The translations under genes and the position numbers were made by a program. The notes below the pieces were generated by a model. That model did no database searches, was not told the origin of the DNA, and saw nothing but the letters and a program-made list of their open reading frames with translations. From the NCBI GenBank assembly GCA_002269645.1, contig NIVC01004862.1, positions 1 to 32,984 on the forward strand: a stretch of DNA of 32,984 nt, given 5' to 3'. Numbering within the stretch: the first letter of the stretch is position 1; each line of letters starts with the position of its first letter. Below, piece after piece: positions 1 to 32,984 of this stretch. Source of the DNA: Macrostomum lignano. Taxonomy: Eukaryota.

Positions 1-2271
1 GGGGTCGCGATAGTCATACGAGTCGATCCTCCTAGAGTGCACGAGAGCTCTCCGCGCATACGGATATCATAGACCGGACTCACAGAGACTTGGCCTAAAA
101 CTCAACGTCAGTACAGTAGAGTGTAAGTGGATTTGTGTTGAGTACTATCCTGAATCGCATCTGTCGTATCTAAGTCGATTTAAGCTGTACGCTCGTATAA
201 ATCAGTGTGAATTTATGATATTGACAATGATTTCGGTTATCACTAAACACGCATGTTATCAATGACGCGCTGAAAACACACACACAGGACCACAAAGCAG
301 TAAATAAGGGAACTTGGCCAAATGGACCAAATGATCTAGCAAGGGTCGATCAGATTACTCGTAGATCTTAAGCCAAAACATTGACAAATACAATTTAATG
401 ATGCAGAGCATTGATAAAAAGTAGTCTAATGCCTAGTAATGAATAAAGCACCCGGCGCTATTACAAACCTTAAATGGGGAATTAAAAGAAGTAAAGTGCA
501 CCTGAAAAAAAGTAGATATGCATAATAATAACGTAGCAGCGTGCCAAACAGTACCTGAGTTGCTTACGTACAGCTGGATCTACAGACGACTTGCTTTCGA
601 TTTGAAAGTCGACCCTCCTGGGTAAGGTCGGCTGCTCCAAAATCCTTAAACTGCTTTTGTACAGCAGCTGCATTGTCGCTGCATCTTCTGCCGTGTCCTC
701 TCGTCCTCTGCCGTCATCAGAGTCGTCCGGATTTCGGATGTTTGCTTCCCAAAATTGATAAGCCATCGCTATCAAATCACACAACTCTGATGTAATAAAG
801 CTAGCTCGATGGCGGTAGGAACGAACACTTTAAGGCTGATTAGCATTACCGCTGAAAGCTCCGCAGGTCCAGGATTGCTCAAATCAATGTACAGTTGTTT
901 ACAAAAGTTTAAATGTCTTTTTTCCAATGCGCCGTCCATGCCCGATCCCAACCAGCGATACCCGATACTCAGGTCCCCCCCGATGACTCATTCCCTACCC
1001 ACCCAACCTCCGCGCTATTGTCCAAATTCACCCAAGCGAAATGCACCTAGTGACCTCCCATCCCTGCCTACAGCCCATAGTTTAAGGAAATGCATGGATT
1101 GTTCATCTGCAAATTGTCTGTGGCCCCAACATAAGCTAAAACCAATAACTTTGAAACGAGGAAAGTATTTATAGACTCACTCAGCCAATGCAATTGAAGC
1201 GGGGGACTACCCAAGATGGGGGGGAGACATTTCCCAGATGAGCAAATCCATGATATTACTTCATCCATGTTCCAGTGCGTGATTACCATCGTTGATGACC
1301 GCGGCATTTAATTTGGTCCAACAACAATTTGGTCCAAACGTCCGTGAGCCATTTGGCGAACTCTTGCCTTCTCGCAACCGTCAGTAGGTTGTCGCGTAAC
1401 GCTGGAATTTCAGCGTCTCTAACAACAATTATCAGTCACTTTTCCAGAGCTCTGCTGATAGTCGAAATCTGATAACCAACTGGAGCTGTTCCTAATTAAC
1501 TTCTACTGTATTTTCTACAGCGTCAACAAAGGGTTTCTCAATTCCATTGAGTATTGGACCTGAGGCTCCAGCAACTTGCCTTGGCGATTGCTACCCTTTC
1601 GCAGGCGACTTATGCTGGCAGTAGTTTAAGCGCGCTGATGGATGCTGTAAACCTATCTTTTCTTTTACATTCAACAACCTTGCAATGTCCTTTGGGTGTT
1701 CATCTCCGTCAAGCGCGCCGATTATGGCATTCGCTCGAGTTCGACAGCCTAGCATGTGGTCCACAATTCTGGGGCTGATCTTGCTCCTCCGCAGCAGTTG
1801 CAAATGAAGCTACGGACTAAATTGATGCTCGTTGGACCGAATTAATATCCGCTGTGCTACGACCTACGAGCTACCATGGACAAAACTCCATAGGCACTAA
1901 AAAACGTATCTTGGATTAAATTCAATGGGCGTAAGCCCTAAATGGGCTGCAAAAAGCTATATTGTAATCACGATATTTGTAGCTAAATTTCTAGTGCACA
2001 ACATTACACTAGCCAATACGTGATCACAAGCCTTTTAAGCACGCTTTCACAATAGCGCTTATTGCGCGTCCTGGTACAATGCCATGCAGCAATACCATCA
2101 ATGCATGGGTGCGCGAACCATAAAAAACAATGCTTTAAATGTAAGATTTAACTGTATTTGTCGGTTGCTTAGAAGAAAGGACAGTAAATTTAAGGCAAAC
2201 AGTATAGTAAAAATACCAATGCGATTTTTATAGATTGATACATAAATTAGCTACAAGATCAAGAACCCTAA

Positions 2272-2387
2272 GGGCTCGTTCTATAAAGCCATCGTAAGAT
2301 AAGATCGTTCTTAGGTCCGATCTCCGCAGTGTAAAAGTTCTGACGTGCGATCGAACTTACGCTACGACAGCTTTATAGTACTACCCC
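2272..2387. mobile_element. PIF/Harbinger-type (Tourist-like) MITE, 116 bp
   Basis: Imperfect terminal inverted repeats: GGGCTCGTTCTATAAAGC versus the reverse complement of the right end, GGGGTAGTACTATAAAGC (15/18). Flanked by TAA at 2269-2271 and 2388-2390, the typical Harbinger target duplication. Confidence 0.65.
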
Positions 2388-3232
2388 TAAATCTACAATA
2401 CCAGCGTACTAACCTGTCTGTCTAAGAATATCTGAAATTAGCAGGCGAATTAAGAGACAGACATTGATTAGTGGCTTCTAAAAGCTTTCGACGAAGAAAC
2501 TTCACACTGTCTCTATTAGAGTGATGAGATTCACCCTGATAGTCCGATGGAAGCAGAGCCGATTTAAGTGCTGCCGGATCTAAAACTGTCAACTCCACTT
2601 CTAGTAACCAGCATGTTGTTCAAAACGCTACTCTTATAGCATGAAAATGAAGTACATTATGAGCCAAAAGTAAAAAATTGAGTCTTTCTTTAAAGGTTTG
2701 CCTCTTCCCCCAGTTTCTACTTATTATTACCAAAAACTCTTCTATTCCAGCAAAAGCTATCATCAGGTTTTATAACAGGTTTTATTTTTCTGTTATCTTA
2801 TATGCATACAAGACAGAAAGACTTTCAGACGCACTGGCCTCCAAAGGTGAGGTGAGGTGAGGCTCACATCTCAAAATTCGCAGAACTGAGTATCTATTTA
2901 AGGCAGTGTATTTTATGGTCAAAAATAACGCAGGCACCATATAAAAAAAATTGAATTGTTTTAGCGGGGTAAGGCTTTAGCGCTAGGCAACCATCAATTT
3001 CCCCAAGCATTTGCTGCCAGTTTTCTTTGTCACGCATATGCAGGCTGCTGGATTGGCCCTCAAACCTCTACTGCTTCGTTATTGGGCATTGAGATCGGCT
3101 AGCCTGGAGCTGGTCTGCTTGGATAGCTCTGTTCGAGACGAGAAGAGGTCGTTGTTTTTTTCACTCCGATGTAAGCGCTTTTCCAGTGCTTATACACTCG
3201 TGCATATCTACATCACTAATACGCTTGAGCGG

Positions 3233-3385
3233 TGATGTAGCTTGAGCAGACGCTTATTATATTTTGAGCCCTGCGGCTCTGCTCACACATTATTAACCAT
3301 AGATTAACTAGGCCGTTGGAATAACTTAAATGGATAACTTAGCATATGAGCTCTTTATTCTTACAAGGCGTCAAACACTCCTCCC
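3233..3385 (-). mobile_element. Candidate polypurine tract plus short 3' LTR of the gag-bearing element
   Basis: On the minus strand GGGAGGAG (3385-3378) is followed directly by TGT. An AATAAA follows, and the segment ends in ...CTACATCA at 3233. A matching 5' LTR was not clearly found. Confidence 0.35.
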
Positions 3386-3599
3386 AAATAGACCTTGGTA
3401 CCGTCCAAGAGTTCGCAATAGTTCGTGTGTCACCTAGTCTTCCTAGGGGTAGAATAGCGCAGTCAGTCAGTTGCATTTCATGTGCGCTGACTGCGATCAT
3501 CTCTCTGATGACTCTGATCTCAGTCAGTTCTGTCTATTCAGTTCTGCCAGATACTTCAGTTACGTTTCTCTCTTTTTAGTATCAATAGTGTCTTTCCGT

Positions 3600-4190
3600 G
3601 CCTTCCTCAAAGTGTCTCAACTCCACTCCACTTCAACTGTTCTGGAGATACTTGATCTGCACGCAGCTTTGAAATGACCTGTCTTTCCAAAGGTCAAGCA
3701 CATTTTCGAACGATGTCGGCACACGTCCTTGTGGTGTCTGTTCCTGTCACAGCAGAAGCAGTTTACTTGGTCTCCTTGATTCCGTTGGTTATACTTCCGA
3801 CGAGACTAAAGTGGATGTTTTGTGATCTTTCTGTCTTGTATCCAGCTTGTGTTGTGGAGCCGTTTTATTGATCAGAAAAGCGTCACTTCTTTCATTTTTT
3901 CTTTCACATTGGCGTCGCGGCTTCACATGCACTGGCCACGGACGTCACCTTCTCCCGAGTGAGGTCCTTCCTTTTTTCGGTCAGAAGCTTTCTGACAGTC
4001 TCCATGTTGGCAAAGCTAAATACAAACTTGCTTTTGCTTCTTGCTTCTTGCTTCAGATGGTGGAAAGCGTACCGATAGGCCAAGTCTTGACTATGCGATT
4101 GTATTTGTTTCCTTCATTAGAAATTCCTTCAGCTTGTCCGTATCTTGTGGCTTTTGAGGGAAAAATCATCGGCCAGCCAGTTAAAGGCTT
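3600..4190 (-). mobile_element. Degenerate Ty3/Gypsy-like gag relic
   Basis: Manual minus-strand translation gives LAYRYAFHHLKQEA, ETVRKLLTEKRKDLTREKVTSVASACEA and tandem zinc knuckles CFCCDRNRHHKDVC / CLTFGKTGHFKAAC (~3657-3760). Interrupted by stops and frameshifts. Confidence 0.75.
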
Positions 4191-4951
4191 TTAAAGGATC
4201 GTTGAAGCCATTGGCTCACTTCAGCCACGACAACTGCATCTAAGCAGTGCTAGTTTTGTGATCAATACAGGAGAAGAACCACAAATTGGCGATGTAGCAA
4301 CGATTAAAGGGCTACTGATGAGCAGATAATCACTAATTATACTTTGAACCATGCGGCTCTGCCCAGACAACCATTGTTGACCATAGCATAACTAGGTTGT
4401 GGTAATAACTCAAAACAGAGGTTTCCTATATGTATGAGCGGTATTTTCTTATGAAGCGTCAAACAATTTTCCGACTTAAGGAATTTTTCAGCATTTTCAT
4501 AAAAACTGGGGGCAAAATGCAATGCAGACAAAATCCGCGTGAAGCTAACTGCACTGCAGTAAAAATTAAAGTATTGCGGGAAACTCTCGGGGGGGGGGGC
4601 AACTTCAGTGCTCCTCCTTCCTAGAGCGAGTCGCTCAGTGCACTCTTACGTCTTCAGGACTGCTCAATGTAATTTCAACTAGTCCAAGGCTTACTTGGAT
4701 GCGATAAATGTTGTGAGAATATAAAGCATACATTCGTCAGCGTTACAACTAATATGTTACAAACCGAAAACATTGATTTCTTGAATCTTGGCAATGGGCT
4801 TACATGTAATCTCGATTGCTTGCAAATTGTTGTAGGAATTCTGTTTGAAACTTTCGTAGGAGCCAGGCCTGCGAGAAATACCTTTCTGTCTTGGAAGGAG
4901 AAAGAATAGTCATCTATAGTTTAAGTGTAATGCCTAATCATAAAACTAATA

Positions 4952-4957
4952 TTTATT
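4952..4957 (-). promoter_or_regulatory. Putative polyadenylation signal of gene 1
   Basis: AATAAA on the minus strand ~195 nt past the stop. It lies in a block (CATAAAACTAATATTTATTGAAACATT) that is identical downstream of gene 2. Confidence 0.5.
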
Positions 4958-5152
4958 GAAACATTCAATTAAATTTCAGACAAAAAACAAGCAAACGTTA
5001 TTTGAAAAGTTAAATACTCCACCAGTTAAGCGTAAACCAGTCAAATGTTTTATAAACCGCAACCAAAAAGTAACACTTGGTTCGACTGCACGGACCAACG
5101 ACCAGTTGTTCAACTTGAATGTCACAACTATTCGCATGATGGTGTTCAGAGG

Positions 5153-6838
5153 TTAGGCGATGGTATTTGTCTGAGCTGGAGCAGCCTGTCGGTTCATCTC
5201 TGCCAGCATTTTGATCTCCTGCTCGCAAAATCTCTGACCGAACAGAGTAGCCGAGATGGTACGGGTCACAGCCGCATTGAGCTGAAAGACACCCAGAGCC
5301 AACACTTCGGCCATTTGACGCGAGCGCTTCGGGTCGTAGCAGGCATTGTTGGGCCAGAGAGTGTTCTCCAGGTAGTTGCGGCACAGCGGGTCGCAGCCGG
5401 TCCGAGAGAAGCACTTGTTGGCGGCCATTTCAGAATAAACTCGTTTCGGCATGTCACCGTTTCGCATCGCGGTGATGTTGCAACCCCTCTCGATCTGAGG
5501 AGTGATGCCGCTCTCCACCCAGCACCGGTTGATTCCAGATACAGCGACACAGTGTCCGAGCTTGTCATGGTTAGTTTGGGCTACATTGTTCGGATAGTAG
5601 TATATCAAAGCGAAACACATTTCATCTCTGGCGCCTTCTCCAAGGAAGATGGTAACGTTGCTTTTTAGTGTGCTGTAGTAGCATTCGGTCTTTACTTCGT
5701 CACCTTTCCGGTATTCGATCGGTGGGTCGAAAGTGTGCACCTTCGGGGATTTGAAATCGTACACTTGAAGAGGAGACAGGTCTTTAATCATAGTTCCGTT
5801 TCTCCACAGCGAGATGCGTCCTTTAATGCCATAAGCGTGCATGTGAATGAGTACGGCGGTGATGTAGCGAGTCTCAGTGTGGTACCGGTTCGTGCACACC
5901 GAAGGGCACGTGTGGTTCACGCTGATCAACGGCTGTCGCGGTGGAAGAACAAGATTTATCTCGCCATACATAAGAGTTCCCAAGTCGTATGGTCGAAGGT
6001 TTTGTGTAAAGTAAAGAGCGAAGCCAGAAGCATCTGTGTAGTTAGAAATCCTCATCGGGTTGTTCCAGTGAAGCTGCAAAACTCCATACCGAATACCCTC
6101 ACCGCCAAATCGGAATCCCGCGTTGCTGTTGATGCACTCACCTTCGAGTCCATAGGCCCAGAGGTTCAGCAACTCGGTGCAGTTTCCAATGGGCATGAAA
6201 CACGGTTGTGAATTATTGAAAAGCGTCTCTGCGGGCTTGACATTGCAGACATACATAATCATGTGGTGCATGACGTTCTTGTTGTCAATGATCGGCCTCG
6301 ATCCGATCAGGTGAACCGGAGAGGCAGTGTTGTTCAGCTCGAACGCCTGACAGATGTAGGTTGTCTCTGTGGCGGGCACGGGAGTCGGTTTGAGGGTGAA
6401 GTTTCTCACGAAAACACCGGGCTCTTCGAATGCTGGACAGCTGAAGGCCTTCGGACACACGGTCCACGAGTTCTTGCACGTCGCGGAGTCGAGCGGGCAG
6501 ATGCCAGGGTGGGACAGTCCAGTCGTTCTCGACGGAGCCGCACCGACCTTCCACACGCAGTCGGGGTCTCCGAGCTCTTGGCCGTTCGTGAGTCCGTCGC
6601 CGTCTGAGTCCTTGCGGCACAGGTCGACCGTCCACTGGAGCCCGGCCGCCTTGAAGTCCAAGCCGAAGGGGTTTCTCGCGTTAGCGCCGGCGGGACTCTG
6701 GTGTCCGACTCCGGCCCAGATGGCGCCTGGCTGGCACGGGTTCGGGACGCGATCGCCGTTCGGGATTCGGGACTGGAAAATTTTGTGTGCGTGAGAGCAG
6801 CTGAGCAGTGCGGCCAGAGCCACAGAAAGCAGCAGCAT
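5153..6838 (-). CDS. Gene 1: secreted temptin-domain copper type II ascorbate-dependent monooxygenase (DBH/TBH/MOXD1-like), 561 aa
   Basis: Uninterrupted ORF. Signal peptide MLLLSVALAALLSCSHA; temptin-like IPNGDRVPNPC...GVGH...NPFGLDFKAAGLQWT.DLC.KDSDGDGLTNGQELGDPDCVW...LSHPG; ETTYIC; CuH ligands MHHM and LQLHWNNP; CuM ligands IHMH and DEMC; many N-glycosylation sequons; no C-terminal TM. Confidence 0.95.
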   Translation of the reverse strand: MLLLSVALAALLSCSHAHKIFQSRIPNGDRVPNPCQPGAIWAGVGHQSPAGANARNPFGLDFKAAGLQWTVDLCRKDSDGDGLTNGQELGDPDCVWKVGAAPSRTTGLSHPGICPLDSATCKNSWTVCPKAFSCPAFEEPGVFVRNFTLKPTPVPATETTYICQAFELNNTASPVHLIGSRPIIDNKNVMHHMIMYVCNVKPAETLFNNSQPCFMPIGNCTELLNLWAYGLEGECINSNAGFRFGGEGIRYGVLQLHWNNPMRISNYTDASGFALYFTQNLRPYDLGTLMYGEINLVLPPRQPLISVNHTCPSVCTNRYHTETRYITAVLIHMHAYGIKGRISLWRNGTMIKDLSPLQVYDFKSPKVHTFDPPIEYRKGDEVKTECYYSTLKSNVTIFLGEGARDEMCFALIYYYPNNVAQTNHDKLGHCVAVSGINRCWVESGITPQIERGCNITAMRNGDMPKRVYSEMAANKCFSRTGCDPLCRNYLENTLWPNNACYDPKRSRQMAEVLALGVFQLNAAVTRTISATLFGQRFCEQEIKMLAEMNRQAAPAQTNTIA

Positions 6839-7569
6839 TATGGTATACTAATTCGCTCGTATATATCTGGATATTTTAAAAATGCGTAATGCGTAACTTA
6901 ATAGTATTTAGATGGAGGTCAATGATCTCTAATCTCTCTAAGACAGAAACCAAAAGAAGAATTTCTGTGCGGAAAGAGGGAGGTAGACAGAAACAGCTGT
7001 TTTAATATGGATAATAAGAGGTGGGTAGTCAGCAGTAGTTTGGGCAGTCAGCAAGCATGTTTCAAGTTTGTCCTTCAACCCATTGCCCAGTGTATTGGGT
7101 TTGTATGGGGGTGGAACTGCACCAGGAAGAGCAGTGGTGTAAGAAGAAAGAGATTCACAATTTACTGGCCTCCTAGTAGTCTAACTTAGAGTAATGGCAT
7201 TGCAACGCCTGCGTGAGCCCAGAGCTGCTTTTCTAGCATGCGTTGGGGGGCTGCGGAAGAGTAGGAAACCATTCGGCAGCCGGATAAGCATCGATTTTTT
7301 CTAGTAGACTGGCATAATGCGTGTGACAGATAAACTCATTCAAGTTGGGGAATATGCTTGTGCGCATGCGTGGAACGTGCGTTATGAATTTCGGGCCAAG
7401 AAATTATTTTACCTATTCATTCGGTCCTGCGCCTCTGGATGAATAACTTCAATTAATCTATATTAAAAAAAGAGTTCAGCAAATTTTTGTTGCTCACGTT
7501 GCTCATTCGCGTGTCACATCTTCTTCGTTAGGACCTGCCCGTAGGACCTGGAGCTGACCCTCGACTACG

Positions 7570-7957
7570 ATGTGACCCGGCGACATATCAAAGCTTCGCA
7601 GACTTGGGGTCCTAATGATGACAGGCTCAAGAAGATCTACCAAAAGGAAAAATCGCCAGAATTACCACCAACCATAAAGTTTCGACTCTCGCAGTTACGC
7701 ACGGGACACTGTCGCCTCACTAACTACTGGAGTCAGATAGTGGGGCTGGCACCCCGAGCCTTTCCCCGAATGCGGGAGTACTGAAGACAAAGATCACTGG
7801 TTCCTGTGCCCTAAGTGAGACTGGCTTCGGTGAGCTCTCGATGCGCACTTGCTTGAGGACTTAAGTAATGAGGACTTGGTGTTAAGATTCCTTCGGTCAG
7901 CCAAACCCGGAGTGGCTCTGGTCGGTTACTCGTTCCGACGACACACACACACACACA
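7570..7957 (+). mobile_element. 3' end of a non-LTR retrotransposon (I/Ingi/R1-like ORF2 C-terminus) with (AC)n tail
   Basis: LSQLRTGHCRLTNYW, then in a shifted frame PECGSTEDKDHWFLCP (CCHC knuckle remnant), then LVLRFLRS, ending in an (AC)n run at ~7941-7957. Confidence 0.7.
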
Positions 7958-9120
7958 GTAGCGGCAGCGCCTGTGAAAACAGCAGTGCCAACATCAGCAC
8001 CTACGGCGGCAACAGCAGCAGCGCCAAAAGCGCTACCAGCGACCGGGACCTACACCTGCGAGGTGCGAACCAATGTCGCGCCCTTTAGACGGCGACCGAA
8101 ATTCGCGCCGGCCGCAGACTCATGGATGTCACAATTCTTTGCATCCCAATCGATCTTACCCTCCTGCAAGCTTCACCAAGAGCATCTGTGAAGTGGCGGC
8201 TTCTTAACGTGGCTCGTCTACGAAAACAAACTGCCAGCGGACTGCGCCGCGACGAGCACCCGAATGATGGTGGAATGCCAGCATCACGGCTACCGGACAT
8301 TTGCCCTCCGGCATTTGCCCTCCGGACATTTGCCCTCCGGCATTTCCCCTCCGGACATTTGCCCTCGAGGACATTTGCCCTCGGGGACATTTGCCCTCCG
8401 GACATTTGCCCTCCGGACATTTGCCCTCGGGGACATTTGCCCTCGGGGACATTTCCCCTCCGGACATTTGCCCTCCGGACATTTCCCCTCTGGAAAAGTA
8501 CAGGTAAGGCTGGGGATAGGGTAGGGCGCGGGTATATATTGCTTACTAGAAAAGGATGAGTTGTTGGCTGGAGAAGAACCTGATGGATGCAAGAGGCGGG
8601 AGGATGAGGTTGGTGCTGGAGGAACGACGGGTGGGTACAGGAGGAGGTGAGGTGAGTAATGTGCGAGGGGGTAAATTTGCAGAGGGCAAATGTGCGGAGG
8701 GGAAATGTCCGGAGGGCAAATGTCCGGAGGGCAAATGTCCGGAGGGCAAATGTCCCCGAGGGCAAATGTCCCCGAGGGGAAATGTCCGGAGGGCAAATGT
8801 CCGGAGGGGAAATGTCCCGGAGGGCAAATGTCCGGAGGGCAAACGCCGCCGAGGGGAAGTGCCGGAGGGCAAGTGCCGGAGGGGAAGTGCCGGAGGGCAA
8901 ATGTCCGGAAGCGCAGCATCACACGTGCTGCGGCCTGTCGACACGCTTCAACAAGCTGCTGGCCGTCGTCAACCTCACCTCGCTCAGCCACATCGGCGCT
9001 GAGAGGGCTTGCAACCTTAATTGGCGAGAGGATGGGCCGCTTGACTGCCACCTGGACTGCCTCCGAGGGCTGGCGCACATTTCGTCCCCAGCTGTGGCTC
9101 AGCAGCAACCTGATCTTTGA
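7958..9120 (+). pseudogene. Possible decayed coding sequence disrupted by the foldback insertion; product unknown
   Basis: One frame runs from the P/T/A-rich ORF at 7973 through a single TGA (8189-8191) to the target site. After removing 8288-8922 (insert plus one TSD copy) it continues in frame to TGA at 9118-9120. No family recognised. Confidence 0.3.
8288..8913. mobile_element. Foldback/Mutator-like non-autonomous element whose inverted arms are 15-bp tandem arrays
   Basis: Left arm (CGGACATTTGCCCTC)n at ~8293-8490, right arm the reverse complement at ~8683-8908, with a ~190-bp unique spacer. Perfect 9-bp target duplication CAGCATCAC at 8279-8287 and 8914-8922. Confidence 0.85.
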
Positions 9121-12258: not shown

Positions 12259-12444
12259 GAAACATTAATTATTTCCAAACAAATCCACACAGTCTAGCAA
12301 TTTAAAAATTAAAGCCAGTCAAAAAATTTGTGAACCGAAACCAAAAAAGTAACTCCTGGTTTAACTGCACGGCCTAATGACTTGATATAAGTTTTGAAAT
12401 TACTGTCAAAACTAGCTCGTATTCGCATGGCAGGTGTCCAGAGG

Positions 12445-14121
12445 TTAGGCGATGGTATTTGTCTGAGCTGGAGCAGCCTGTCGGTCCATCTCTGCCACCT
12501 CCTGCTCGCAAAATCTCTGACCGAACAGAGTAGCCGAGATGGCCTGAGTCACTGCCGCATTGAGCTGAAAGACACCCAGAGCCAACACTTCGGCCATTTG
12601 ACGCGAACGCTTCGGGTCGTAGCAGGCATTGTTGGGCCAGAGAGTGTTCTCCAGGTAGTTGCGGCACAGCGGGTCGCAGCCGGTCCGAGAGAAGCACTTG
12701 TTGGCGGCCATTTCAGAATAAACTCGTTTCGGCATGTCACCGTTTCGCATCGCGGTGATGTTGCAACCGCTCTCAACTTGGGGAGTGATGCCGCTCTCCA
12801 CCCAGCACTGGTTGATTCCAGATACTACGACACAGTGTCCGAGCTTGTCATGGTTACTTTGGGCTACATTGTTCGGATAGTAGTATACAAATGCGAAGCA
12901 CATTTCATCTCTGGTGCCTTCGCCATAGAAGATTGAAACGTTGGTTTTTAGTGTGCTGTAATAGCATTCGGTCTTTACTTCGTCACCTTTCCGGTATTCG
13001 ATCGGTGGGTCGAAAGCATGAATCTCCGGTGAGTTGTAATCGTACACTTGAAGAGGAGACAGGTCTTTAATCATAGTTCCGTTTCTCCACAACGAGATGC
13101 GTCCTTTAATGCCATAAGCGTGCATGTGGATGAATGCTGCGGTGATGTAGCGAGTCTCAGTGTGGTACCGGTTCGTGCACACCGAAGGGCACGTGTGGTT
13201 TACGCTGATTAACGGCTGTCGCGGTGGAAGAACGAGATTTATCTCGCCATACATAAGAGTTCCCATGTCGTATGGTCGAAGGTTTTGTGCAAAGTAAAGA
13301 GCAAAGCCAGATGCATCGGTGTAGCCTGAATGTTTCATCGGGTTGTTCCAGTGAAGCTGCAAAACTCCGTACCGAAGGCCATCACCGCCGATTCGGAACC
13401 CCGCGTTGCTGTTGATGCACTCACCTTCAAGTCCGTAGGCCCAGACGTTCATCAACTCGGTGCAGTTTTCAATGAGCATTAAACACGGTTGTGGACTGTT
13501 GAAAAGTGTCTCTGCGGGTTTTGCAGTGCAGGCATACATAATCATGTGGTGCATGACGTTCTTGTTGTCGATGATCGGCCTCGATCCGATCAGGTGAACC
13601 GGAGAGGCAGTGTTGTTCAACTCGAACGCCTGACAGATGTAGGTGGTCTCAGTGGCGGGCACGGCAGTCGGTTTAAGGGTGAAGTTCCTGACGGTCACGT
13701 TGACACTGTCAAGTGCTGGACAGCTGAAGGCCTTCGGACACACGGTCCACGAGTTCTTGCACGTCGCGGAGTCGAGCGGGCAGATGCCAGGGTGGGACAG
13801 TCCAGTCGTTCGCGCTGGAGCCGCACCGACCTTCCACACGCAGTCGGGGTCTCCGAGCTCTTGGCCGTTTTTGAGTCCGTCGCCGTCCGAGTCCTTGCGG
13901 CACAGGTCGATCGTCCACTGGAGCCCGGCCGCCTTGAAGTCCAAGCCGAAGGGGTTTCTCGCATTGGCGCCGGCGGGGCTTTCGTGTCCGACTCCGGCCC
14001 AGATGGCGCCTGGCTGGCACGGGTTCGGGACGCGGTCGCCGTTCGGGATTCGGGACTGGAAAATTTTGTGCGCGTGAGAGCAGCTGAGCAGTGCAGCCAG
14101 GGCCACAGGAAGCAGCAGCAT
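12445..14121 (-). CDS. Gene 2: secreted temptin-domain copper type II monooxygenase, 558 aa, tandem paralog of gene 1
   Basis: Uninterrupted ORF with the same architecture and all Cu ligands (MHHM, LQLHWNNP, IHMH, DEMC). Ends QTNTIA* like gene 1; no TM. Confidence 0.95.
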   Translation of the reverse strand: MLLLPVALAALLSCSHAHKIFQSRIPNGDRVPNPCQPGAIWAGVGHESPAGANARNPFGLDFKAAGLQWTIDLCRKDSDGDGLKNGQELGDPDCVWKVGAAPARTTGLSHPGICPLDSATCKNSWTVCPKAFSCPALDSVNVTVRNFTLKPTAVPATETTYICQAFELNNTASPVHLIGSRPIIDNKNVMHHMIMYACTAKPAETLFNSPQPCLMLIENCTELMNVWAYGLEGECINSNAGFRIGGDGLRYGVLQLHWNNPMKHSGYTDASGFALYFAQNLRPYDMGTLMYGEINLVLPPRQPLISVNHTCPSVCTNRYHTETRYITAAFIHMHAYGIKGRISLWRNGTMIKDLSPLQVYDYNSPEIHAFDPPIEYRKGDEVKTECYYSTLKTNVSIFYGEGTRDEMCFAFVYYYPNNVAQSNHDKLGHCVVVSGINQCWVESGITPQVESGCNITAMRNGDMPKRVYSEMAANKCFSRTGCDPLCRNYLENTLWPNNACYDPKRSRQMAEVLALGVFQLNAAVTQAISATLFGQRFCEQEVAEMDRQAAPAQTNTIA

Positions 14122-15699: not shown

Positions 15700-17290
15700 A
15701 TGATTACGAAGGTCTCCTGCAGCCAACACGACGTCGATGTCCGTTTGATGCAGCTGATTAAAATTTTCGGGTTTGCACGCTTCAGTAATTGATGTGTGTG
15801 GCCCGAGGTAAGTGAGTCTGGCTCACGTAAAGGCGGAACATATGCTGACAAAATGCTCAGCAGTTTCATCACTTGAGTTGCAGAAACTACAGTTGCACTC
15901 AGGGACTACTCAAACACCGGGACGGGAAACTAGGATTTTTTTACGAGGCTGGTCTATCATCAGCAGTAGAAAATAACCATAGACAACAAAGTAACACAGC
16001 ATCTCTCTAATGAAAATAATTGCCTGCCAGCCTCGTAAAAAAATTTTTGTTTCCCGTCCCGGTGTTTGAGTAGTCCCTGGTTGCACTACAGTGGCGTTGC
16101 CCTGTAAGTACTGGTGCCTGGAGAAGCAGCCGTGACCCAAGAAGGTCATGGTGGCAGCCCGAATGTCTCCTCGCGAGAGGCGCAAGAGGAGCATTCGGAG
16201 CTGGTGAGAGGGCTGGGTGAGCGGTACTGGGTTCTGATCCACGCTTTGATGCGCGAATCAATGACACAGACGGGAATCAGGACAAGGGGTTCGGGCCCGA
16301 GAGAGGAGCCGGAGACGCCAACTTTTGCCAGCTCATTCCCTCGGATCTTCACGTGCCCCAGAACCCACTTAAGGGTAATTTTGTTGGTTAAACCCAACAT
16401 GTTAAGGAGTTTGATACGCCGAGGACTGTAGCAGAATTGACGCTACAGCCACTGATGGCGAGAACTACACTTTGGAAGACACTGGAGTTGACCCCATTAT
16501 ACCGAGGGTGGGTTGCGATGACCCTCCCATTCAGGAAGATTCCAACACTAAAGCTGGTGTTGACTGACTGCTTAGAACCGTCGGTGTAGCAGGTTCTAGT
16601 GATAATTGGTGGTATCGTGTGGGTCGATACCTACGGAGTAGCGTTGTCTCAGATAGAGCGTTGAGTCAATGCCTCGGTGAAGACGCGATAGGCCTGACAC
16701 TCGTTAAGAATATTGAGGCACAGGTCACTACGTTGAACGAGGTTCCGCTTAGCAGGTGCTCTCATGTAGAGGAATTTGACGACGGCATCTAGTAGACGCC
16801 GCGTCGTTCTAGCCGCCTCACCCCTGACGAAGAGGTCGAGAGGCGGTAAATCAAGGAAGGCCCCCATGCTTGCAAAAGGCGTGGACCTAGTGGCGTTGCA
16901 GATAAGCCTACACACTCTACCCTGGATCGTGTTGAGCAACTCTGCATGGGTTTTGACCTGGGTGGCGCTAACACAGGCAACAGAAGCGTACGCAATGGCA
17001 GGTATAACCACAAAAATATAGATCCACCAAAGACGCTTTGGTGATAAACCCCAGGAAGTGCCAAGTGCTCGCCGGAGCTGGGCTAGGATGGCCCGCTTGG
17101 CTTTTGCTTTTACGTGGAAGGACCAGTTTAACCAGATGTTCTAGAATGACCCCGAGGCATCTGGTCTGTTGCATGAAGGCGCTGTCTCTGCCGTATAGCT
17201 GCAGAGGCCCTATGTTTCAGCGTTTTCGACTAGTGAACAATAGTCGAACACAGAACGGAATCCCGATATCAGGAGCCGAGCCGAACCCGC
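15700..17290 (-). mobile_element. 5'-truncated R1/LOA-type LINE with RNase H and CCHC knuckle, copy 1 (decayed)
   Basis: RCLGVILE; GTSWGLSPKRLWWIY; LDLPPLDLFV; CYTDGS; LKWVLGHVKIRGNELA; LSRGDIRAATMTFLGHG. Homologous to 28404-29468. The 3' boundary is approximate. Confidence 0.85.
15900..16079. mobile_element. hAT-family MITE (180 bp) nested in the LINE
   Basis: ~50-bp terminal inverted repeats beginning CAGGGACTACTCAAACACCGGGACGGGAAAC. Perfect 8-bp target duplication GTTGCACT at 15892-15899 and 16080-16087. Confidence 0.92.
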
Positions 17291-19473: not shown

Positions 19474-21683
19474 TGATGTAACCGCCCTTGTCGCCTGTCC
19501 GCTCCTATTGAGAGACGAACGCTTGGCTAGAGGGGGCAATGACCGTAGGCTGCCTATGACCGGGCAATGACCTGACGGACCTCCAGCACCAGACTGTCCC
19601 GCCCACATGATTAGTAGCTTTGGTAGCGCTTCGTGACCAGAGGGCCAAGGACCCACATGGACCCCACCTGTAGCCAAGGTGCAATAGTTGGTCACTCGGT
19701 CATGGTATGACCGAGTGGCTGCAACCACTCTATGTGACCTGGCGCACCTGGATCTTTCTACCAGACCTCTCGAGGCTAGAGCCCCGTCTGGAATGGTTAC
19801 CAGGGGATTTAGGCTAACAGGGGAGACGCATGCAGCCGAGTACAGGGACTCTGCTTGGGGCATGATCGGGAACTCTGGGCTCAATCCTGGAGGATTTCTC
19901 AGCAGGGGATCCTTTGTGGCTGTGAGCGAGGCTGACTTGCGACTTTGATTACTAAGAGTAGTATGAGGCGAACATGTACTGTCTCTAGTTTAGATTGCTC
20001 AGGGCGAAGGGACGCGTCAGCATGGGGTTGCAACCTTCCTACTGTCATTCTGTGCCAAGACTCGCTAATCCCTCTACTGCACGCACACGCGGCCCCGCAG
20101 CACGCACTCACAGGCGGGCTTTGCACGGGGAGAGGCCATTAGCTTACCCAAACTTCCTTATGCTTTGCCACCCCGGGAGAAAGGCTTAGCAAGCCATGAG
20201 TTAAATGATGGTGAAAGATCGAATAATGATGAAGTTAGTTAGTAGTTAGTAATTAGGCCTTTAGGCGAATAATTAGGCAATTAGGCGGCTTCACTATTGA
20301 GTAAAATACAGCAAAAGATACGGTATCACAATTGGCTCAGCTCTCTAATCAGACAATGGGAAATAGGCAAACCCCGGATAAGCAAAGACAATTAGAGCAC
20401 AAATTAGTAACAGGAACTTACCGGCAGCTGCACAGAGAGAGAGAGAGAGGCGGAGTGACCGGTGGCGGCTGTAGGCTGCAGTCAGGCAGACAGTGAAGCG
20501 GCGATGCGCTGGAGCGACGAGGCGCTGATGTAGATCAGGCGATGCTGATGATGCTGGGCGGTATCAGACCGCTGGCCGATAGGCGAGCTCACTTGGGGAG
20601 CTAAGGATAACTTGGCGGTAACAGACCGCGGACCGGCAGGGATTCGTCTTAGAGACGAATGGGTCAGAACTCAATCTGACAGCAAGTCCAAAGAAGGACG
20701 AGGAGAGGAAGAGTCTGAGGATTCTCATGCCGAAATCGCTTCCTTTTATACACCTCACAGCCGCCTCCTCAAGGTCGTTACCATGGCTCCCTCTCTCTGA
20801 TTGGCTGCCGGCAGAATGACGTCAGAATGAGTCATGATGAGAAGCATGAGACCGGCATAGCAACATGAGAAATCGGGAAATTGCGCAATCCGGAGGTGGG
20901 GTGGGGGGATAATTGGCGCAGCGGGTGGTCGCGAAAGTATTGCGCAAGCAACCATTGAGAACAATAGGGCTGGGGTCGAGAACAAAGGAATTGGAAAACG
21001 GGGATAATTGGGGAGAACTGAGAACAATGGAAAAGTAAACATTGGAGAAAAGGTGATAATTAGGTGCGAAAACGAGAACAAAAGAAAGAGAAAATCGGAG
21101 AAAATGTGATAATTGGTGGGGGTCGAGAGAACAAAAGAATCAAAAACGAGAACAATAGAAGCGGAGGTGGGGTGGGTGTCGCATGAGAAATTTGGGGAGG
21201 AGAACAATGGCATGAGAAAAGGTTGCGCAAGAGAGGGGGATGAGTCATCGATGAGTCACCGAGGGGGAGAGGGGGTCACACGACTTGCGTCACCGTTTGG
21301 GAGTTTGAGAGGGGATGGGGAGACGGTGAGCACACAAAATACTGTAAGTAGACACAGAGAAAGAGGGGGCAGCGCAGGAAAAGAGTGCAGAGGGAGACAA
21401 AAAGAGGGGGGATAGGGAAAGTACAGGAAGAATAGGGCGGAAAACAGAAGAGATAGGGTAGAGGGGGAGGTACAGAAAGGGGTAGGGGGCTCCGGAAAGG
21501 CAGGTGTGGCGGCAGGGGAGACGGGACCAAGGCAGCAGGAGGGGTGCAGCAGAGCGGGAGTCTCCAGGCCCGGTCGGAGACCTGGCCGAGTCTCGACAGC
21601 TCTGTGCAGAGGGTGCACGGGATAGGAGGCACTTTCGAAAAAGTTCCCATGCCCTATCCCGCGACCAGAGCGTGGTTACATCA
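19474..21683. mobile_element. Candidate solo LTR or non-coding LTR-derived element with purine-rich degenerate repeats
   Basis: Perfect 10-bp inverted termini TGATGTAACC / GGTTACATCA, flanked by TATT and CATT (imperfect 4-bp duplication). Internal (GA)n and a GAGAACAA-rich purine tract at ~20780-21500. No credible ORF. Confidence 0.4.
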
Positions 21684-22189
21684 CATTCTTCTATACAGTG
21701 ACTGCGCACAAATCCCTGTCGACTTAAACGCCAGAGAGAAAAAATCAATTTGAAAAGTCATATCAGGGAAAGAGCAGAAATTTTAGCATCCACAATGGGG
21801 AATTGTATTACATGGTGAGAAATAACGATGGCAGTAAGCGCATGCAGCCCGAAGACAAGCGCAAGGTGCTGTTTACTGAGCAGGAAGTGCAAGAAATGAT
21901 GTGTTCCTTATTACCAGTCCTCAACTGTAATCAAGGAACAATCACTTCTAGCTCTGTAGCTAGGCAACCCAGTAATCAAATGAAGGTATTCAATTACCTT
22001 TAATCCGGATTCTTAGATTTCGTTCTTGAGTCGTTCTCAACTGTAGATTTCTCAGTAGATCTCGTAGACTTCTAGACGTCTTCAGGTGTCGATCGGGTCC
22101 GAGTTTCCTTCTTCTCTCTTTTAGAAGTATTTCCGGCCGGAATCTGTCGTTCGGACCAATAGGAAGCTTCCAAATTAACAATGGGTACC

Positions 22190-22917
22190 CTGCGCCAAAC
22201 TGCGGTCTTAATTAAGCCTCCTTCTTCTAGCAGTGCCTCTATGCACTCTAGGAATAGCTCCGGAAACCACTGATAGTCTTCTAAGATCTATCAGGGGCAG
22301 TCCTTCTGGAGACTGCAACCAGTGGAGTCTAAACAGACTCAAGAGTCTCAACAGACTCAAACTAAACTCAAGTCACACTGGACTTGAGCGAGACGTCTCT
22401 AACAACAACAGGCGCAAATAAGGAAGGCTTACCGCAACAACCGACCGAGTATTGGTCCAGGAAGTCCGACTGTGGCTTCCTCTTCGGAGCTCTTCTCCTT
22501 CCGGAGGAATTGTGGCTCCGGGTCCGTTCCGGACCACTTGTATTTATAGGCGTTCAGACCTCTCTCGAGGTCGTACATCACTGTCTTCGCAAATGTCAAA
22601 GGGTCACGATTCGGTGGCTGTCAAGCATGACAGGGTAGAAAGTTGCGCAACTAGTCTACTGTAAAAGCGCATGATTGGTTACCGTAGCTGGTAGACTTTG
22701 ATTGGTTCATCCGGGTGCAACCCGAGTGCAAACCAAATGATGACTTGAAGGTGGGGTTTGAACTGACAGTTGTTGGTCGCACGTGATTGGGTGATTTCTA
22801 AAATTAGCATGCTCGAGATTTCTCTCTTTATATTGGTTAATTCGAATATATGTATGGTTCAGCGCATATCCTTATACATGCTCCTCAAATTACTACTATT
22901 TAAGTAGTACGTTAACA
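22190..22917 (-). mobile_element. Candidate 5' LTR with primer-binding site
   Basis: On the minus strand: several CCAAT boxes, TATAAATACAAG (22548-22537), GGTAAGCCTTC, then ...CCGCA-GTT-TGGCGCAG (~22198-22191), which matches the first 8 nt of a tRNA-Ser-type PBS. Confidence 0.4.
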
Positions 22918-22964
22918 ATTTTAAATAACTTTTCTGGGAGATATAATACTCTACAGAAAATGTC

Positions 22965-23647: not shown

Positions 23648-23901
23648 ATAATACGAAAGTAATTATACAGAGAATCATGTATATTTTATAGTGCATACTT
23701 CTATACTGTAGCAGACACTGTTAGATCATATGCCTTCATTTCGGCGACCCGAAACTGACAGGAGCCCCGGAGATTTTAAACGGTAACACCGGTACGAAAG
23801 GCGTGCTGGGAATCGCTGTCAACTCGCATGAAATCAGATACCATCGGGTCCAGGAGATTTGAAAGGCTTGAAGGTTCTGAACGCACTGGCGATTAAATCT
23901 T

Positions 23902-23963
23902 CAGTGACAATGTACGTGACAATCAGTGACAATCAGTGTCATCAGTGACAATGACAATGTACG
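23902..23963. repeat. Short degenerate tandem repeat (CAGTGACAAT-like unit)
   Basis: cagtgacaatgtacgtgacaatcagtgacaatcagtgtcatcagtgacaatgacaatgtacg. Confidence 0.55.
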
Positions 23964-24372: not shown

Positions 24373-26297
24373 TCAGCCACTCGCTTCATTGTCGTACACT
24401 TTATAGACGCTCGACTTGTCCGGAGCGCCCTGCTGTCCGCTGCTGAGCCCGGCAGCCGAGCTCGCACCCTTCAACTTGATTGACAGAAAGATTAGCAGAG
24501 CCAGAATCAGAATGAACCCCAGGCAGCTGCACACAACGATGATGATCAGCAGGTGCTCCGAGCTCAGGCCGCCCTTCTGCGACGTTGGAGTAGCGGGGGC
24601 CTAGCGGTGGTTGTTGTACGATCTGGAGCAGCCGGTCGGTCCATCTCTGCCAGCATTTTGATCTCCTGCTCGCAAAATCGCTGACCGAACAGAGTAGACG
24701 ATATGGCCAGAGTAACAGCTGAATTGAGCTGAAATAAACCCAGAGCCAACACTTCGGCCATTTGACGCGAACGCTTCGGGTCGTAGCAGGCATTGTTGGG
24801 CCAGAGAGTGTTCTCCAGGTAGTTGCGGCACAGCGGGTCGCAGCCCGTTCGAGAGAAGCACTTGTTGGCGGCCATTTCAGAATAAACTCGGTTTGGGATT
24901 TCACCGTTTCGCATCGCGGTGATGTTGCAACCCCTCTCGATTTGAGGAGTGATGCGGCTCCGCAACCAACACGAATTGATGCCCGACACACCGATGCAGC
25001 GTCCGAGCTTATCGTCGGTGCTCACGGAGACATCGTTAGGATAATAATATAGAAATGAAAGGCACATCTCGTCGCTAGTACCTTCGCCAAAGAAGATAGT
25101 AACGTTGGTTTTTTGTGTGTTAAAATAACATTCGGTCTTTACTTCGTCACCTTTCCGGTATTCGATCGGTGGGTCGAAAGCATGAATCTCCGGTGAGTTG
25201 TAATCGTACACTTGAAGAGGAGACAGGTCTTTAATCATAGTTCCGTTTCTCCACAACGAGATGCGTCCTTTAATGCCATAGGTGTGCATGTGGATAGTTG
25301 CCCCGGTGATGTAGCGAGTCTCATTGTGGTACCGGTTCGTGCACACCGAAGGGCAGGTGTGGTTCACGCTGATCAACGGCTGTCGCGGTGGGAGAACGAG
25401 ATTTCCCTCGCCATACATCACAGTTCCCAAGTCGTATGGTCGCAGGTTTTGTGTAAAGTAAAGAGCAAAGCCAGAAGCGTCGGTGTAGCCTGAATGCCTC
25501 GCCGGGTTGTTCCAGTGAAGCTGCAAAACTCCGTACCGAAAGCCATCACCGCCGATTCGGAACCCCGCGTTGCTGTTGAAGCACTCACCTTTGACTCCGT
25601 AACCCCAGAGGTTCAACATCTCGGTGCAGTTTCCAAGAGCCATGAAACACTGTTTTGGATTATCGAACAGCGTCTGTTCTGGCTTGACACTGCAGGCGTA
25701 CATAATCATGTGGTGCATGACGTTCTTGTTGTCGATGATCGGCCTCGATCCGATCAGGTGAACCGGAGAGGCTGTGTTGTTCAGCTCGAACGCCTGACAG
25801 ATGTAGGTGGTCTCATTGGCGGGCACGGGAGTCGGTTTGAGGGTGAGGTTTCTCATGGTCACGTTGGCACCGTCCAGTGCTGGACAGCTGAAGGCCTTCG
25901 GACACACGGTCCACGAGTTCTTGCACGTCGCGGAGTCGAGCGGGCAGATGCCAGGGTGGGACAGTCCAGTCGTTCGCGCTGGAGCCGCACCGACCTTCCA
26001 CACGCAGTCGGGGTCTCCGAGCTCTTGGCCGTTCGTGAGTCCGTCGCCGTCCGAGTCCTTGCGGCACAGGTCGACCGTCCACTGGAGCCCGGCCGCCTTG
26101 AAGTCCATGCCGAATGGGTTTCTGGCGTTAGCGCCGGCGGGACTCTGGTGTCCGACTCCGGCCCAGATGGCGCCTGGCTGGCACGGGTTCGGGACGCGGT
26201 CGCCGTTCGGGATTCGGGACTGGAACGACTTGTGCGCGTGAGAGCAGCTGAGCAGTGCAGCCAGAGCCACAGAAAGCAGCAGCATAGTCGTTTTCAT
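24373..26297 (-). CDS. Gene 3: temptin-domain copper type II monooxygenase, probably type I membrane-anchored (~641 aa if one base is restored; 577 aa as written)
   Basis: Same architecture and Cu ligands as genes 1 and 2. Adding one C to the C5 run at 24595-24599 extends the frame through PATPTSQKGGLSSEHLLIIIVVCSCLGFILILALLIFLSIKLKG...VYKVYDNEASG to tandem TGA TGA (24375-24370). Confidence 0.88.
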
Positions 26298-31070: not shown

Positions 31071-31138
31071 ATAAAAGATGCGTGGAAAAGAATGAACGAC
31101 AGAGCCGCAAATCTGCAGCTTTGAACCCGACCCGAATC

Positions 31139-32984
31139 ATGAAACTTGGAATCAGCTTAATAGCGACTGCAGCCGTTGTGCTGCAGACTGTACACGGCTA
31201 CTCAAGTTTCAAGTCGAGGATACCCAACGGAGATCGCGTCCCGAACCCGTGCCAGGTGGGCACCATCTGGGCCGGAGTGGGGCACGAGAGTGCGGTTGGA
31301 GCCGACACTCGCAACAAGTTCGGTTTAGACTTCAAGGCGGCCGGGCTCCAGTGGACGGTCGACCTGTGCCGCAAGGACTCGGACGGCGACGGACTCACGA
31401 ACGGCCAAGAGCTCGGAGACCCCGACTGCGTGTGGAAGGTCGGAGCCACTCCGGCGCGTACGACTGGACTGTCCCACCCTGGAATTTGCGAGTTCGGCTC
31501 CACAAAATGCAGCAACGCGTGGAACGTGTGCCCAAAAGCATTCAGCTGTCCAGCCATGAATGACCCCAGTGTGACCGTGAGAAACTTCACCATCAACAAG
31601 AACACCCCGGTTCCAGCGAAGGAAACCACGTATGTCTGTCAGGCGTTCGAGCTGAACAACACCGCCACGCCTGTTCACCTGATCGGATCAAAGCCAATCA
31701 TTGACAACAAGAACGTCATGCACCACATGATCATGTACGCCTGCTCTTCGAAGCCGAATCAGACGTTTTTCGACGCCCCGCAGGAGTGCTTTATGGCCCG
31801 CTCGGACTGCAATGAGATAGTCAATCTGTGGGCATTCGGGCTCGAGGGCGAGTGCTATAACAACAACACCGGCTATCGCATCGGAGGCGAGGGCTATCGC
31901 TACGCAATGCTGGAGCTCCACTGGAACAATCCGGCTAAGCTCAGTACATATACAGACTCATCTGGCTTGGCGCTCTACTTCACCCCAACCTGAGAAAATA
32001 CGACCAGGGCACTGCAATGTACGGCGAAGGCAATCTCGTGCTTCCGCCGCGTCAGCCAGTGGTTAATTTTAACCACACTTGCCCGTCGGTGTGCACGGAG
32101 AAGTACCACACGGAGACGCGCTACATCACCGGAGCCGGCATCCACATGCACGGCTACGGAGTGCAGGGCCGCATCTCGCTATGGCGAAATGGAACTCTCG
32201 TCAAGGATTTGCATCCGCTGCAGGCCTACGATTACAACTCGCCTAAAATGAACATGTTCGATCCGCCAATCGAATACCGCAGAGGTGACGAAGTTAAAAC
32301 TGAATGCTACTTCAGCACTCTAAAGTCCAATAAAACAATTTACTTCGGCGAAGGAACTAGTGACGAAATGTGCCTGTCGTTTCTGTCCTATTATCCCAAC
32401 AATGTCAGCAAGCCGAATTCTGAAAAGCTGGGCAGCTGCATCGCCGTCTCCGGAATCAACATGTGCTGGGTGCAGAGCGGCATCGAGCCTCACATAGAGC
32501 GGGAATGCAACATCACAGACATGCGAAACGGCAACCTCACTGAACAGGTATCAGCCGAAATGACAGCCAATGGATGCTTCTCCAAGACCGGCTGCAATCC
32601 AAAATGCCGTGACTATCTCAACAACACCCTGTGGCCGTCGAACGCCTGCTACGATCCGAAGCGAGCGCTTCAGATGACCGAGACAATGGCCACGGGATAT
32701 CTGATAAATCAGTCACGCAAGCCGACCTTTATTAAGACACTATACGGTCAGAGCTTCTGCAACAGGAGGTTGCCATGCTGTCGACGCTAGACCAGAAAGC
32801 TGCCACAATTTCGGCGTCTACAACCCGACTACAAACCAGGTGTTGGGTTCGAGTTACACTGGATTGAAGTCCGAGCACCTGCTTATCATTATTATTGTTT
32901 GCAGCTGCCTCGGCTTATCATTCATAATCATAGCTATTCTGGGTGTAGCGCTAGCAAGCTAGGAGGCGACGGCTTCCCGAAGCC
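31139..32984 (+). CDS. Gene 4: divergent temptin-domain copper type II monooxygenase with C-terminal TM. Broken as written by 3-4 single-base deletions (assembly error or pseudogene) and probably runs off the window.
   Basis: Signal peptide MKLGISLIATAAVVLQTVHG; temptin domain; MHHM, LELHWNNP, IHMH, DEMC. One-base shifts at ~31987, ~32762 and ~32825 restore FTPNLRKYDQGTAMYGE, CxQEVAML and TTPTTNQ...KSEHLLIIIIVCSCLGLSFIIIAILGVALA. Confidence 0.85.

Follow-up and report, generated by a model that had tools for sequence, protein, structure and literature searches.

A shared 37-nt deletion and the remains of a membrane anchor in two Temptin-monooxygenase genes of Macrostomum lignano

The 32,984-nucleotide (nt) contig NIVC01004862.1 of the flatworm Macrostomum lignano, called the window here when its full length is meant, carries a cluster of intronless genes in which a Temptin_C domain is combined with a copper type II monooxygenase. 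Genes 1, 2 and 3 are three long open reading frames (ORFs) on the minus strand, and a series of ORFs on the plus strand makes up gene 4. Genes 1 and 2 are probably descended from a membrane-bound ancestor that became a soluble enzyme through a 37-nt frameshifting deletion common to both; remains of the anchor lie past the stop codon, the ORFs were kept, and the shortened gene was duplicated in tandem. The comparisons below establish the homology, the deletion, the shared ancestry of genes 1 and 2, the direction of the change and the constraint on the ORFs. Since the leader and the domains are kept and the anchor is gone, the product of either gene should be a soluble enzyme, lumenal or secreted.

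The proposed history would run as follows. In the common ancestor of genes 1 and 2, 37 nt of a stalk rich in Ser, Thr and Pro would have been lost between two short GCC repeats. Translation would then have passed into the +1 frame and ended three bases on, at a stop codon hidden across the Leu-Ser/Thr codons of the motif GL(S/T)SEH. The juxtamembrane motif, transmembrane (TM) helix and cytoplasmic tail downstream would have become 3′ untranslated region (UTR) and decayed at about the neutral rate, and the product would have kept its N-terminal leader, the Temptin_C domain and both copper sites while losing the anchor. Tandem duplication of the truncated gene would finally have given rise to genes 1 and 2, both of them open. 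The features on which this argument depends are listed here, with lengths of proteins in amino acids (aa).

5153..6838, minus strand: gene 1, an intronless ORF of 561 aa with Temptin_C and Cu2 monooxygenase domains and a hydrophobic N-terminal leader, without a C-terminal TM
5153..5155, minus strand: stop codon TAA of gene 1, at the site of the hidden +1-frame TGA within the Leu-Ser/Thr codons (CTG AGC or TTG ACC) of the anchored paralogs
5156..5158, minus strand: junction of the 37-nt deletion in gene 1, where GCC is the surviving copy of the microhomology
12445..14121, minus strand: gene 2, a paralog of 558 aa with the same 37-nt deletion, the same TAA and an extra in-frame deletion of 9 nt
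12445-12447, minus strand: stop codon TAA of gene 2, at the same position as the stop of gene 1
24374..26297, minus strand: gene 3, which served as the anchored reference paralog; its ORF as written covers 24564-26297 with the stop at 24564-24566, and the TM and cytoplasmic tail follow in the -1 frame to 24374
~24478-24552, minus strand: TM of gene 3, in the -1 frame relative to the written ORF

The ancestral anchor and the 37-nt deletion

The Pfam domains Temptin_C, Cu2_monooxygen and Cu2_monoox_C are matched in both gene 1 and gene 3. The N-terminal catalytic domain (PF01082) scores 81.2 bits in gene 1 and 83.7 bits in gene 3 at a gathering cutoff of 30, and gene 1 reaches 65.1 bits for the C-terminal catalytic domain (PF03712; cutoff 23) and 131.3 bits for Temptin_C (PF24784; cutoff 27). 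The motifs MHHM, LHWNNP, HMHAYG and DEMC, starting at residues 190, 256, 332 and 405, are present in the proteins of genes 1 and 2; from what is known of PHM and DBH we take them to belong to the copper sites, and the ligand motifs of CuH (HH ... H) and CuM (HxH ... M) are intact in both proteins. By their domains and ligand motifs the products of genes 1 and 2 are thus predicted copper type II monooxygenases. The hydrophobic leader of gene 1, MLLLSVALAALLSCSHA, is also that of the anchored gene 3.

When gene 3 joined to its out-of-frame tail was used as the query of a protein search, the M. lignano proteins P0001, P0002, P0004 and P0006 were found at 55-94% identity, together with the transcript-derived relatives P0003 and P0005 and with hundreds of mollusc, brachiopod and bryozoan proteins named 'DBH-like/MOXD/temptin' at about 40%. 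All six proteins P0001-P0006 (605-650 aa) end in GL(S/T)SEHLLIII(V/I)VCSCLGF, followed by a basic stop-transfer segment and a cytoplasmic tail, and the distant relative P0009 (622 aa, 38% identity) has a C-terminal TM with a short basic tail; a short hydrophobic C-terminus is found in most of the mollusc relatives but is absent from a few. The genes of P0001, P0002, P0004 and P0006 are single exons that continue through the TM. The Kyte-Doolittle mean over 19 residues reaches 3.31 at residues 585-603 of g3B, the intact copy of gene 3 that encodes P0123. No 19-residue segment reaches 1.6 in the proteins of genes 1 and 2, which stop before the GL(S/T)SEH motif; these two genes are therefore not of the type I anchored Macrostomum Temptin-monooxygenases, in which the motif stands in frame with a helix of about 25 residues. 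Because all six Macrostomum-type relatives as well as P0009 have a C-terminal TM, and because deep paralogs share a stalk of 117 nt, the C-terminal anchor is, as judged from these alignments, the ancestral state.

The length of the stalk was counted starting at the first nucleotide of the FC(E/Q)QE codons and running up to those for S-E-H. It is 117 nt in g3B, P0001, P0004 and P0003, 114 nt in P0005 and 99 nt in P0002, whereas it is 80 nt, ending in frame 2, in gene 1 and in the second copies of genes 1 and 2, g1B (locus L009) and g2B (locus L008). Gene 2 of the window, with its additional loss of 9 nt, has 71 nt, and gene 3 of the window has 116 nt. As 80 equals 117 minus 37, genes 1 and 2 share a frameshifting deletion of 37 nt. 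The deletion is common to genes 1 and 2 and to their second copies (about 97% identical; NIVC01000861.1), and its presence in all four copies makes it older than the duplication that separated gene 1 from gene 2. In P0001 the sequence reads GCC, then the stretch ACGCC...GGCGGCC that is missing from genes 1 and 2, then TGAGC, so that a GCC stands at either end of the deleted stretch, the two repeats being separated by 37 nt; in gene 3 the repeat is GC. Such short GC/GCC microhomology is weak evidence on the mechanism of the deletion.

In the shifted frame the ribosome would at once meet TAA, and in every anchored paralog this site holds an off-frame TGA within the Leu-Ser/Thr codons CTG-AGC or TTG-ACC. 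An initial annotation of this DNA had already proposed that gene 1 and gene 3 share this out-of-frame stop, and the alignment holds: gene 1 ends in ACC ATC GCC TAA at 5164-5153 of the minus strand, and GCCTAACCTCTGAACACC of gene 1 aligns without gaps to GCCTGAGCTCGGAGCACC of gene 3 at 14 of 18 positions. Its reading of RLTSEH in the shifted frame was recovered in the -1 frame at 5159-5142, where the anchored paralogs have GL(S/T)SEH. The same annotation gave the stalk of gene 1 as 36 nt shorter than that of gene 3, or 37 nt if gene 3 is corrected, which agrees with 80 nt against 116 or 117 nt, and it noted the GC microhomology found here as GC in gene 3 and GCC in P0001. Its two further proposals, that a frameshifting deletion removed the anchor and that duplication came afterwards, accord with the shortening of the stalk from 117 to 80 nt, which brings the hidden stop into frame, and with the occurrence of the deletion in genes 1 and 2 and both second copies.

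Remains of the anchor in the 3′UTR

Beyond the deletion junction, DNA that corresponds to the anchor of gene 3 can be followed in two blocks of the gene 1 3′UTR and, less completely, in that of gene 2.

5141..5159, minus strand: fossil block 1 of gene 1, CGCCTAACCTCTGAACACC, reading RLTSEH in the old frame and corresponding to the juxtamembrane motif GL(S/T)SEH
5109..5136, minus strand: fossil block 2 of gene 1, TGCGAATAGTTGTGACATTCAAGTTGAA, identical at 22 of 28 positions to the last TM codons and the I-K-L-K stop-transfer codons of gene 3
12430..12451, minus strand: fossil block 1 of gene 2, CGCCTAACCTCTGGACACCTGC, reading RLTSGHL in the old frame; 16/22 against gene 3
4952..4957, minus strand: AATAAA, putative poly(A) signal of gene 1, within a 30-nt block identical in all four truncated copies
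5157-6838 against 24604-26285, and 12449-14121 against 24604-26285: homology of genes 1 and 2 to gene 3, limited to the coding sequence (CDS), at a synonymous divergence (dS) of only about 0.25

Within the first 100 nt past the junction, the best ungapped 21-mer starts exactly at the junction in g1B, gene 2 and g2B and matches gene 3 at +37 with 16-17 of 21 positions; the junction 21-mer of gene 1 in the window matches gene 3 at +37 with 15/21. In each of the four copies, none of 400 shuffles reached the observed identity. In a gapped local alignment of the 3′UTR with the anchor of gene 3, which for gene 1 links block 1 to block 2, 0 of 1000 dinucleotide shuffles reached the combined score of gene 1 or of g1B. 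The possibility raised with the initial annotation, that the UTR matches are no better than chance, does not agree with these junction and gene 1 results. Block 2, TGCGAATAGTTGTGACATTCAAGTTGAA, is aligned without gaps to TGCTAATCTTTCTGTCAATCAAGTTGAA of gene 3, where the TM runs out into the I-K-L-K codons, and its identity was reached by 3 of 2000 shuffles; it has decayed in gene 2. The hydrophobic core is deleted between blocks 1 and 2, as the initial annotation had stated; about 49 nt of it are absent. Of the two matches to the ends of the TM segment that it had named, TCAAGTTGAA (5118-5109) stands as the end of the 22/28 block, but the assignment of GTTGTG to the 5′ end of the TM is not secure, since in the best alignment it falls opposite CTTTCTG, close to the 3′ end. 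A three-way MAFFT alignment of the 3′ ends did not give the proposed alignment, which was recovered by the analysis of frames and offsets.

Identity in the fossil ranges from 73 to 81%, which fits neutral decay, about 79% being calculated for neutral sites from the dS of 0.25 between gene 1 and g3B. Genes 1 and 2, g1B and g2B have the 30-nt AATAAA block in identical form some 200 nt downstream of the stop, and its position would place the fossil inside a 3′UTR of about 200 nt. The ATCAT in gene 1 of the window is a derived change, since g1B and gene 2 both read CACCTGCC. Over 4700-7000 the window differs from the NCBI assembly GCA_002269645.1 at three positions, all of them in UTR and none within 5109-5165; the fossil region is unchanged there and is therefore not an artefact of the present assembly.

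Several observations speak against the proposed history, and those that concern the 3′ ends are the following. The gapped score alone is not significant for the UTR of gene 2, where it was reached in about 100 of 1000 shuffles. When the whole window was scanned blind with an nhmmer profile of the anchor, the UTRs of genes 1 and 2 were missed and genes 3 and 4 alone gave TM-like DNA, so that the significance of the fossils depends on the prior knowledge of their position. The homology of genes 1 and 2 to gene 3 is confined to the CDS, with neither flank matching, and its 3′ end falls exactly at the deletion junction; it may come from conversion limited to the CDS or from replaced flanks, and the 3′ flank itself may have been either replaced or left to decay. 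Comparison of the UTRs of genes 1 and 2 with the cytoplasmic tail and 3′UTR of gene 3 gave nothing significant beyond block 2.

Some candidates were set aside in the course of these comparisons. A match of GTCCGTGCAGTCGAACCAAGTGTTAC to the tail of gene 3, caught by eye, was dropped in view of the lack of significant homology to the tail. Weak nhmmer matches at 16749-17163 and 20423-20434 were dropped as well, tblastn showing no paralog remnant there. Retroposition as the origin of the CDS-limited homology was rejected because the 3′UTRs are not homologous and the copies are tandem. The idea that the TM-coding DNA acts as an RNA element, with unusual conservation of synonymous sites, was rejected since this DNA was not among the top windows.

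The missing core and flank leave room for another order of events, in which the anchor was first lost by the deletion of about 49 nt from the TM core, or because a duplication breakpoint just past the TM brought in a new 3′ end, and the stalk deletion came later and only shortened a protein that was already soluble. The gap in the TM core is also of frameshifting length, and past block 2 no homology to the tail or 3′UTR of gene 3 is seen although about 79% identity would be expected. Against this, two independent truncating events in coding sequence would be needed where one event followed by neutral decay is simpler, and the UTRs are so rich in indels that a loss of 49 nt after the release from constraint is unremarkable. 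Both lesions occur in all four copies, so that either could have come first; an earlier deletion in the TM core is a further point against the proposed history, though on balance we consider this order unlikely.

That the short form is ancestral, the anchored paralogs having gained a stalk extension and a TM while the UTRs resemble the anchor by chance, is hardly conceivable. Its sole support is the blind profile scan that missed the fossils. The anchor is found in every outgroup paralog, in the transcript-derived relatives and in P0009 at 38% identity; the 117-nt spacing is conserved, the old frame still reads RLTSEH, and no shuffle reached the positional match.

It might also be asked whether the proteins of genes 1 and 2 are held at the membrane in another way, by an uncleaved signal-anchor, by splicing to an unrecognised exon or by ribosomal frameshifting. 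The membrane form of vertebrate DBH arises from an uncleaved signal peptide and not from a C-terminal TM, and in the public annotation gene 1 is modelled in its 5′ part only. However, the scan with the anchor profile picked up nothing resembling a TM in the neighbourhood of genes 1 and 2, introns are absent from the family in this cluster, gene 1 and the anchored gene 3 share their N-terminal leader, and frameshifting cannot recover an anchor whose TM core is missing from the DNA. We hold continued attachment by any of these routes to be very improbable.

Maintenance of the truncated genes

The ORFs of gene 1 (561 codons) and gene 2 (558 codons) are intact, and g1B is open as well. The ratio of nonsynonymous to synonymous divergence (dN/dS) is 0.28 between gene 1 and gene 2 (binomial P = 2e-10) and 0.17 between gene 1 and g1B, compared with 0.34 for the anchored pair g3B and P0001. 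Between genes 1 and 2, 11 indels fall in 292 aligned nt of 3′UTR, and a single one, in frame and 9 nt long, in 1674 coding nt. Retention is supported by these intact ORFs, by the copper ligands, by the dN/dS of 0.28 and by the scarcity of coding indels, and the suggestion of the initial annotation that the truncated gene was retained is upheld on the same grounds. Genes 1 and 2 show neither the disrupted ORF nor the neutral pattern of a non-functional pseudogene.

This argument is weakened by gene conversion, which is extensive among the paralogs and which can keep ORFs open and lower dN/dS without selection. Mosaic identities are found at columns 361-450, 541-900 and 1036-1125 of the CDS alignment: gene 1 reaches an identity of 1.00 to P0002 where its identity to gene 2 is only 0.82, gene 2 equals gene 3 over columns 1036-1125, and gene 3 is close to P0002 over columns 541-900. 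Moreover, g2B (L008 15853-17538, plus strand; 96% protein identity to gene 2) is interrupted at codon 161 by a premature stop (TETT*SCQ). At least this one truncated copy is decaying, and not every truncated copy is therefore maintained.

Full-length records are lacking too. No transcript or protein record of full-length gene 1 or gene 2 was found, and look-ups of the exact proteins in a collection of 15 billion sequences came back empty; the last 162 aa of gene 1, used as a query for homologs, gave no match despite the existence of close paralogs, a result not counted as evidence. The NCBI annotation of gene 1 comprises only the first 136 aa. This Temptin-only model, P0122 (L002 19600-20032, minus strand, equal to about 6410-6842 of the window), ends at the domain boundary in ...KAFSCPA, and P0124 is a similar 'Temptin' entry of 145 aa. 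P0122 may stem from an incomplete transcript model, or a short isoform of this kind may really exist.

Taken to its end, the case from conversion would make genes 1 and 2 decaying, non-functional copies whose open frames and low dN/dS come from recurrent conversion by anchored neighbours. The mosaic tracts and the premature stop in g2B would fit it, as would the finding of neither a complete gene model nor a database protein for genes 1 and 2. Yet gene 1, g1B and gene 2 are each open over about 1.7 kb while the adjacent UTRs gained 4-11 indels in about 300 nt, dN/dS within the truncated clade (0.17-0.28) is as low as in the anchored pair, the copper ligands are intact, and conversion never restored the anchor. 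Such decay is quite unlikely in our estimate, and we prefer the reading that the truncated genes 1 and 2 have been maintained as soluble enzymes.

Gene 3, related systems and the rest of the window

The following features belong to gene 3 and to the other anchored gene of the window.

24595..24599, minus strand: C5 run of gene 3, the cause of its frameshift; C6 in the 99.8%-identical copy
31136..32984, plus strand: gene 4, an anchored paralog of the P0004 type that extends past the window end; 7 indels break the window copy

The initial annotation had suspected a 1-nt error in gene 3. The run is indeed C5 instead of C6 at 24595-24599, and an intact copy with C6 exists, namely the 99.8%-identical one on NIVC01000861.1 (L008), which encodes the anchored P0123 of 641 aa. 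C5 is present in NIVC01000757.1 as well, where gene 3 is annotated as 577 aa. The window differs from NIVC01000757.1 by homopolymer-type indels, 7 of them inside gene 4, and for this reason C5 could equally be an error, an allele or a real loss of the anchor, in the last case a second loss via the same hidden stop. A tiny GT..AG intron that would rescue the frame of gene 3 was rejected, the candidate being 19 nt long and in the wrong frame.

The same hidden stop follows 40 nt downstream of the change from C6 to C5. Should C5 be real, gene 3 would be a second, independent soluble form (577 aa), with the anchor kept in the 99.8%-identical copy. Loss of the anchor could then be recurrent and possibly still segregating, the C-run and the conserved off-frame stop acting as a toggle between a membrane-bound and a secreted enzyme; we regard this idea as rather doubtful.

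PAM shares the catalytic superfamily (Cu2_monooxygen plus Cu2_monoox_C) with these genes; in its type I topology a stalk is followed by a single TM and a cytosolic tail, and its anchored and soluble forms coexist. The layout of stalk, TM and tail and the presence of both forms are thus alike in the two systems. The soluble forms of PAM come from one gene through alternative splicing of the TM exon and endoproteolysis, whereas here the soluble form would be fixed in the genome, in paralogs of their own without introns, through a frameshifting deletion. Unlike PAM, the window genes lack a PAL domain and carry Temptin_C as the N-terminal one. With DBH, MOXD1 and MOXD2 they share the ligand motifs and the copper type II, ascorbate-dependent fold, and the mollusc relatives are often named 'DBH-like' or 'MOXD1 homolog' in databases; the vertebrate proteins, however, carry an N-terminal DOMON domain where the window proteins have Temptin_C. 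MOXD1 is described as membrane-associated in the endoplasmic reticulum (PMC8067471).

The closest relatives are the anchored M. lignano paralogs P0001, P0123, P0002 and P0004 (BOX15_Mlig027408g1, Mlig017064g4, Mlig007919g2 and Mlig028174g1), with 80-90% nucleotide identity over the CDS. The anchored paralogs sit in one cluster with genes 1 and 2 and share their domains and their lack of introns, but in them an in-frame stalk of 99-117 nt leads into the TM and the tail, while genes 1 and 2 lack 37 nt and the TM core. The hidden stop itself recalls the 'ambush' idea, according to which off-frame stops limit the cost of translational slips. An off-frame T(G/A)A in conserved Leu-Ser/Thr codons ends genes 1 and 2 and the C5 form of gene 3; unlike a safeguard against slips, it serves here as a permanent terminator after a genomic deletion.

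Literature searches for Macrostomum with temptin, or for temptin with this enzyme family, found nothing specific. Genes 1 and 2 are a previously unannotated example of a known evolutionary route, with no new mechanism or kind of element. As a natural example of one small deletion that would turn a tethered enzyme into a soluble one, they leave the ancestral state, the lesion, the recruited stop and the remains all readable. The public gene models can be corrected to full-length products of 561 and 558 aa for genes 1 and 2, in place of the annotated 136-aa fragment of gene 1. The lineage-specific expansion of Temptin-monooxygenases in this flatworm, with tethered and free members, could bear on secreted or extracellular hydroxylation chemistry.

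Parts of the window are matched by other contigs of GCA_002269645.1: positions 1-7900 of the window are 99.6% identical to NIVC01003975.1, and positions 21138-32984 are 99.93% identical to NIVC01000757.1. The anchored paralog P0002 lies about 1.4 kb past the left edge of the window, convergent with gene 1. Gene 4 is intact (650 aa) in NIVC01000757.1, where the 7 indels of the window copy are absent, and one further indel is the sole other difference in 11.8 kb; the breakage of gene 4 looks like assembly-type indel error clustered near the window end.

A 15-bp unit, CCGGACATTTGCCCT, forms inverted arrays between genes 1 and 2, at 8293-8494 and 8682-8909 (about 13 and 15 copies), in a patch with 59% G+C, and the long ORFs listed around these arrays (8293-8909) have no Pfam match. 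A THAP-domain ORF lies between genes 3 and 4, in a region given as 29104-29700 and 28409-29107, both on the minus strand. The THAP region is partly repeated between genes 2 and 3 (28620-29468 at 15752-16560) and is therefore probably derived from a transposon; a tandem array of a 21-bp unit in ten copies adjoins it at 29876-30092. The plus strand is strongly purine-rich over 21001-22000 (GC skew 0.34, AT skew 0.34), and a 53-bp imperfect tandem repeat is found at 20989-21119.

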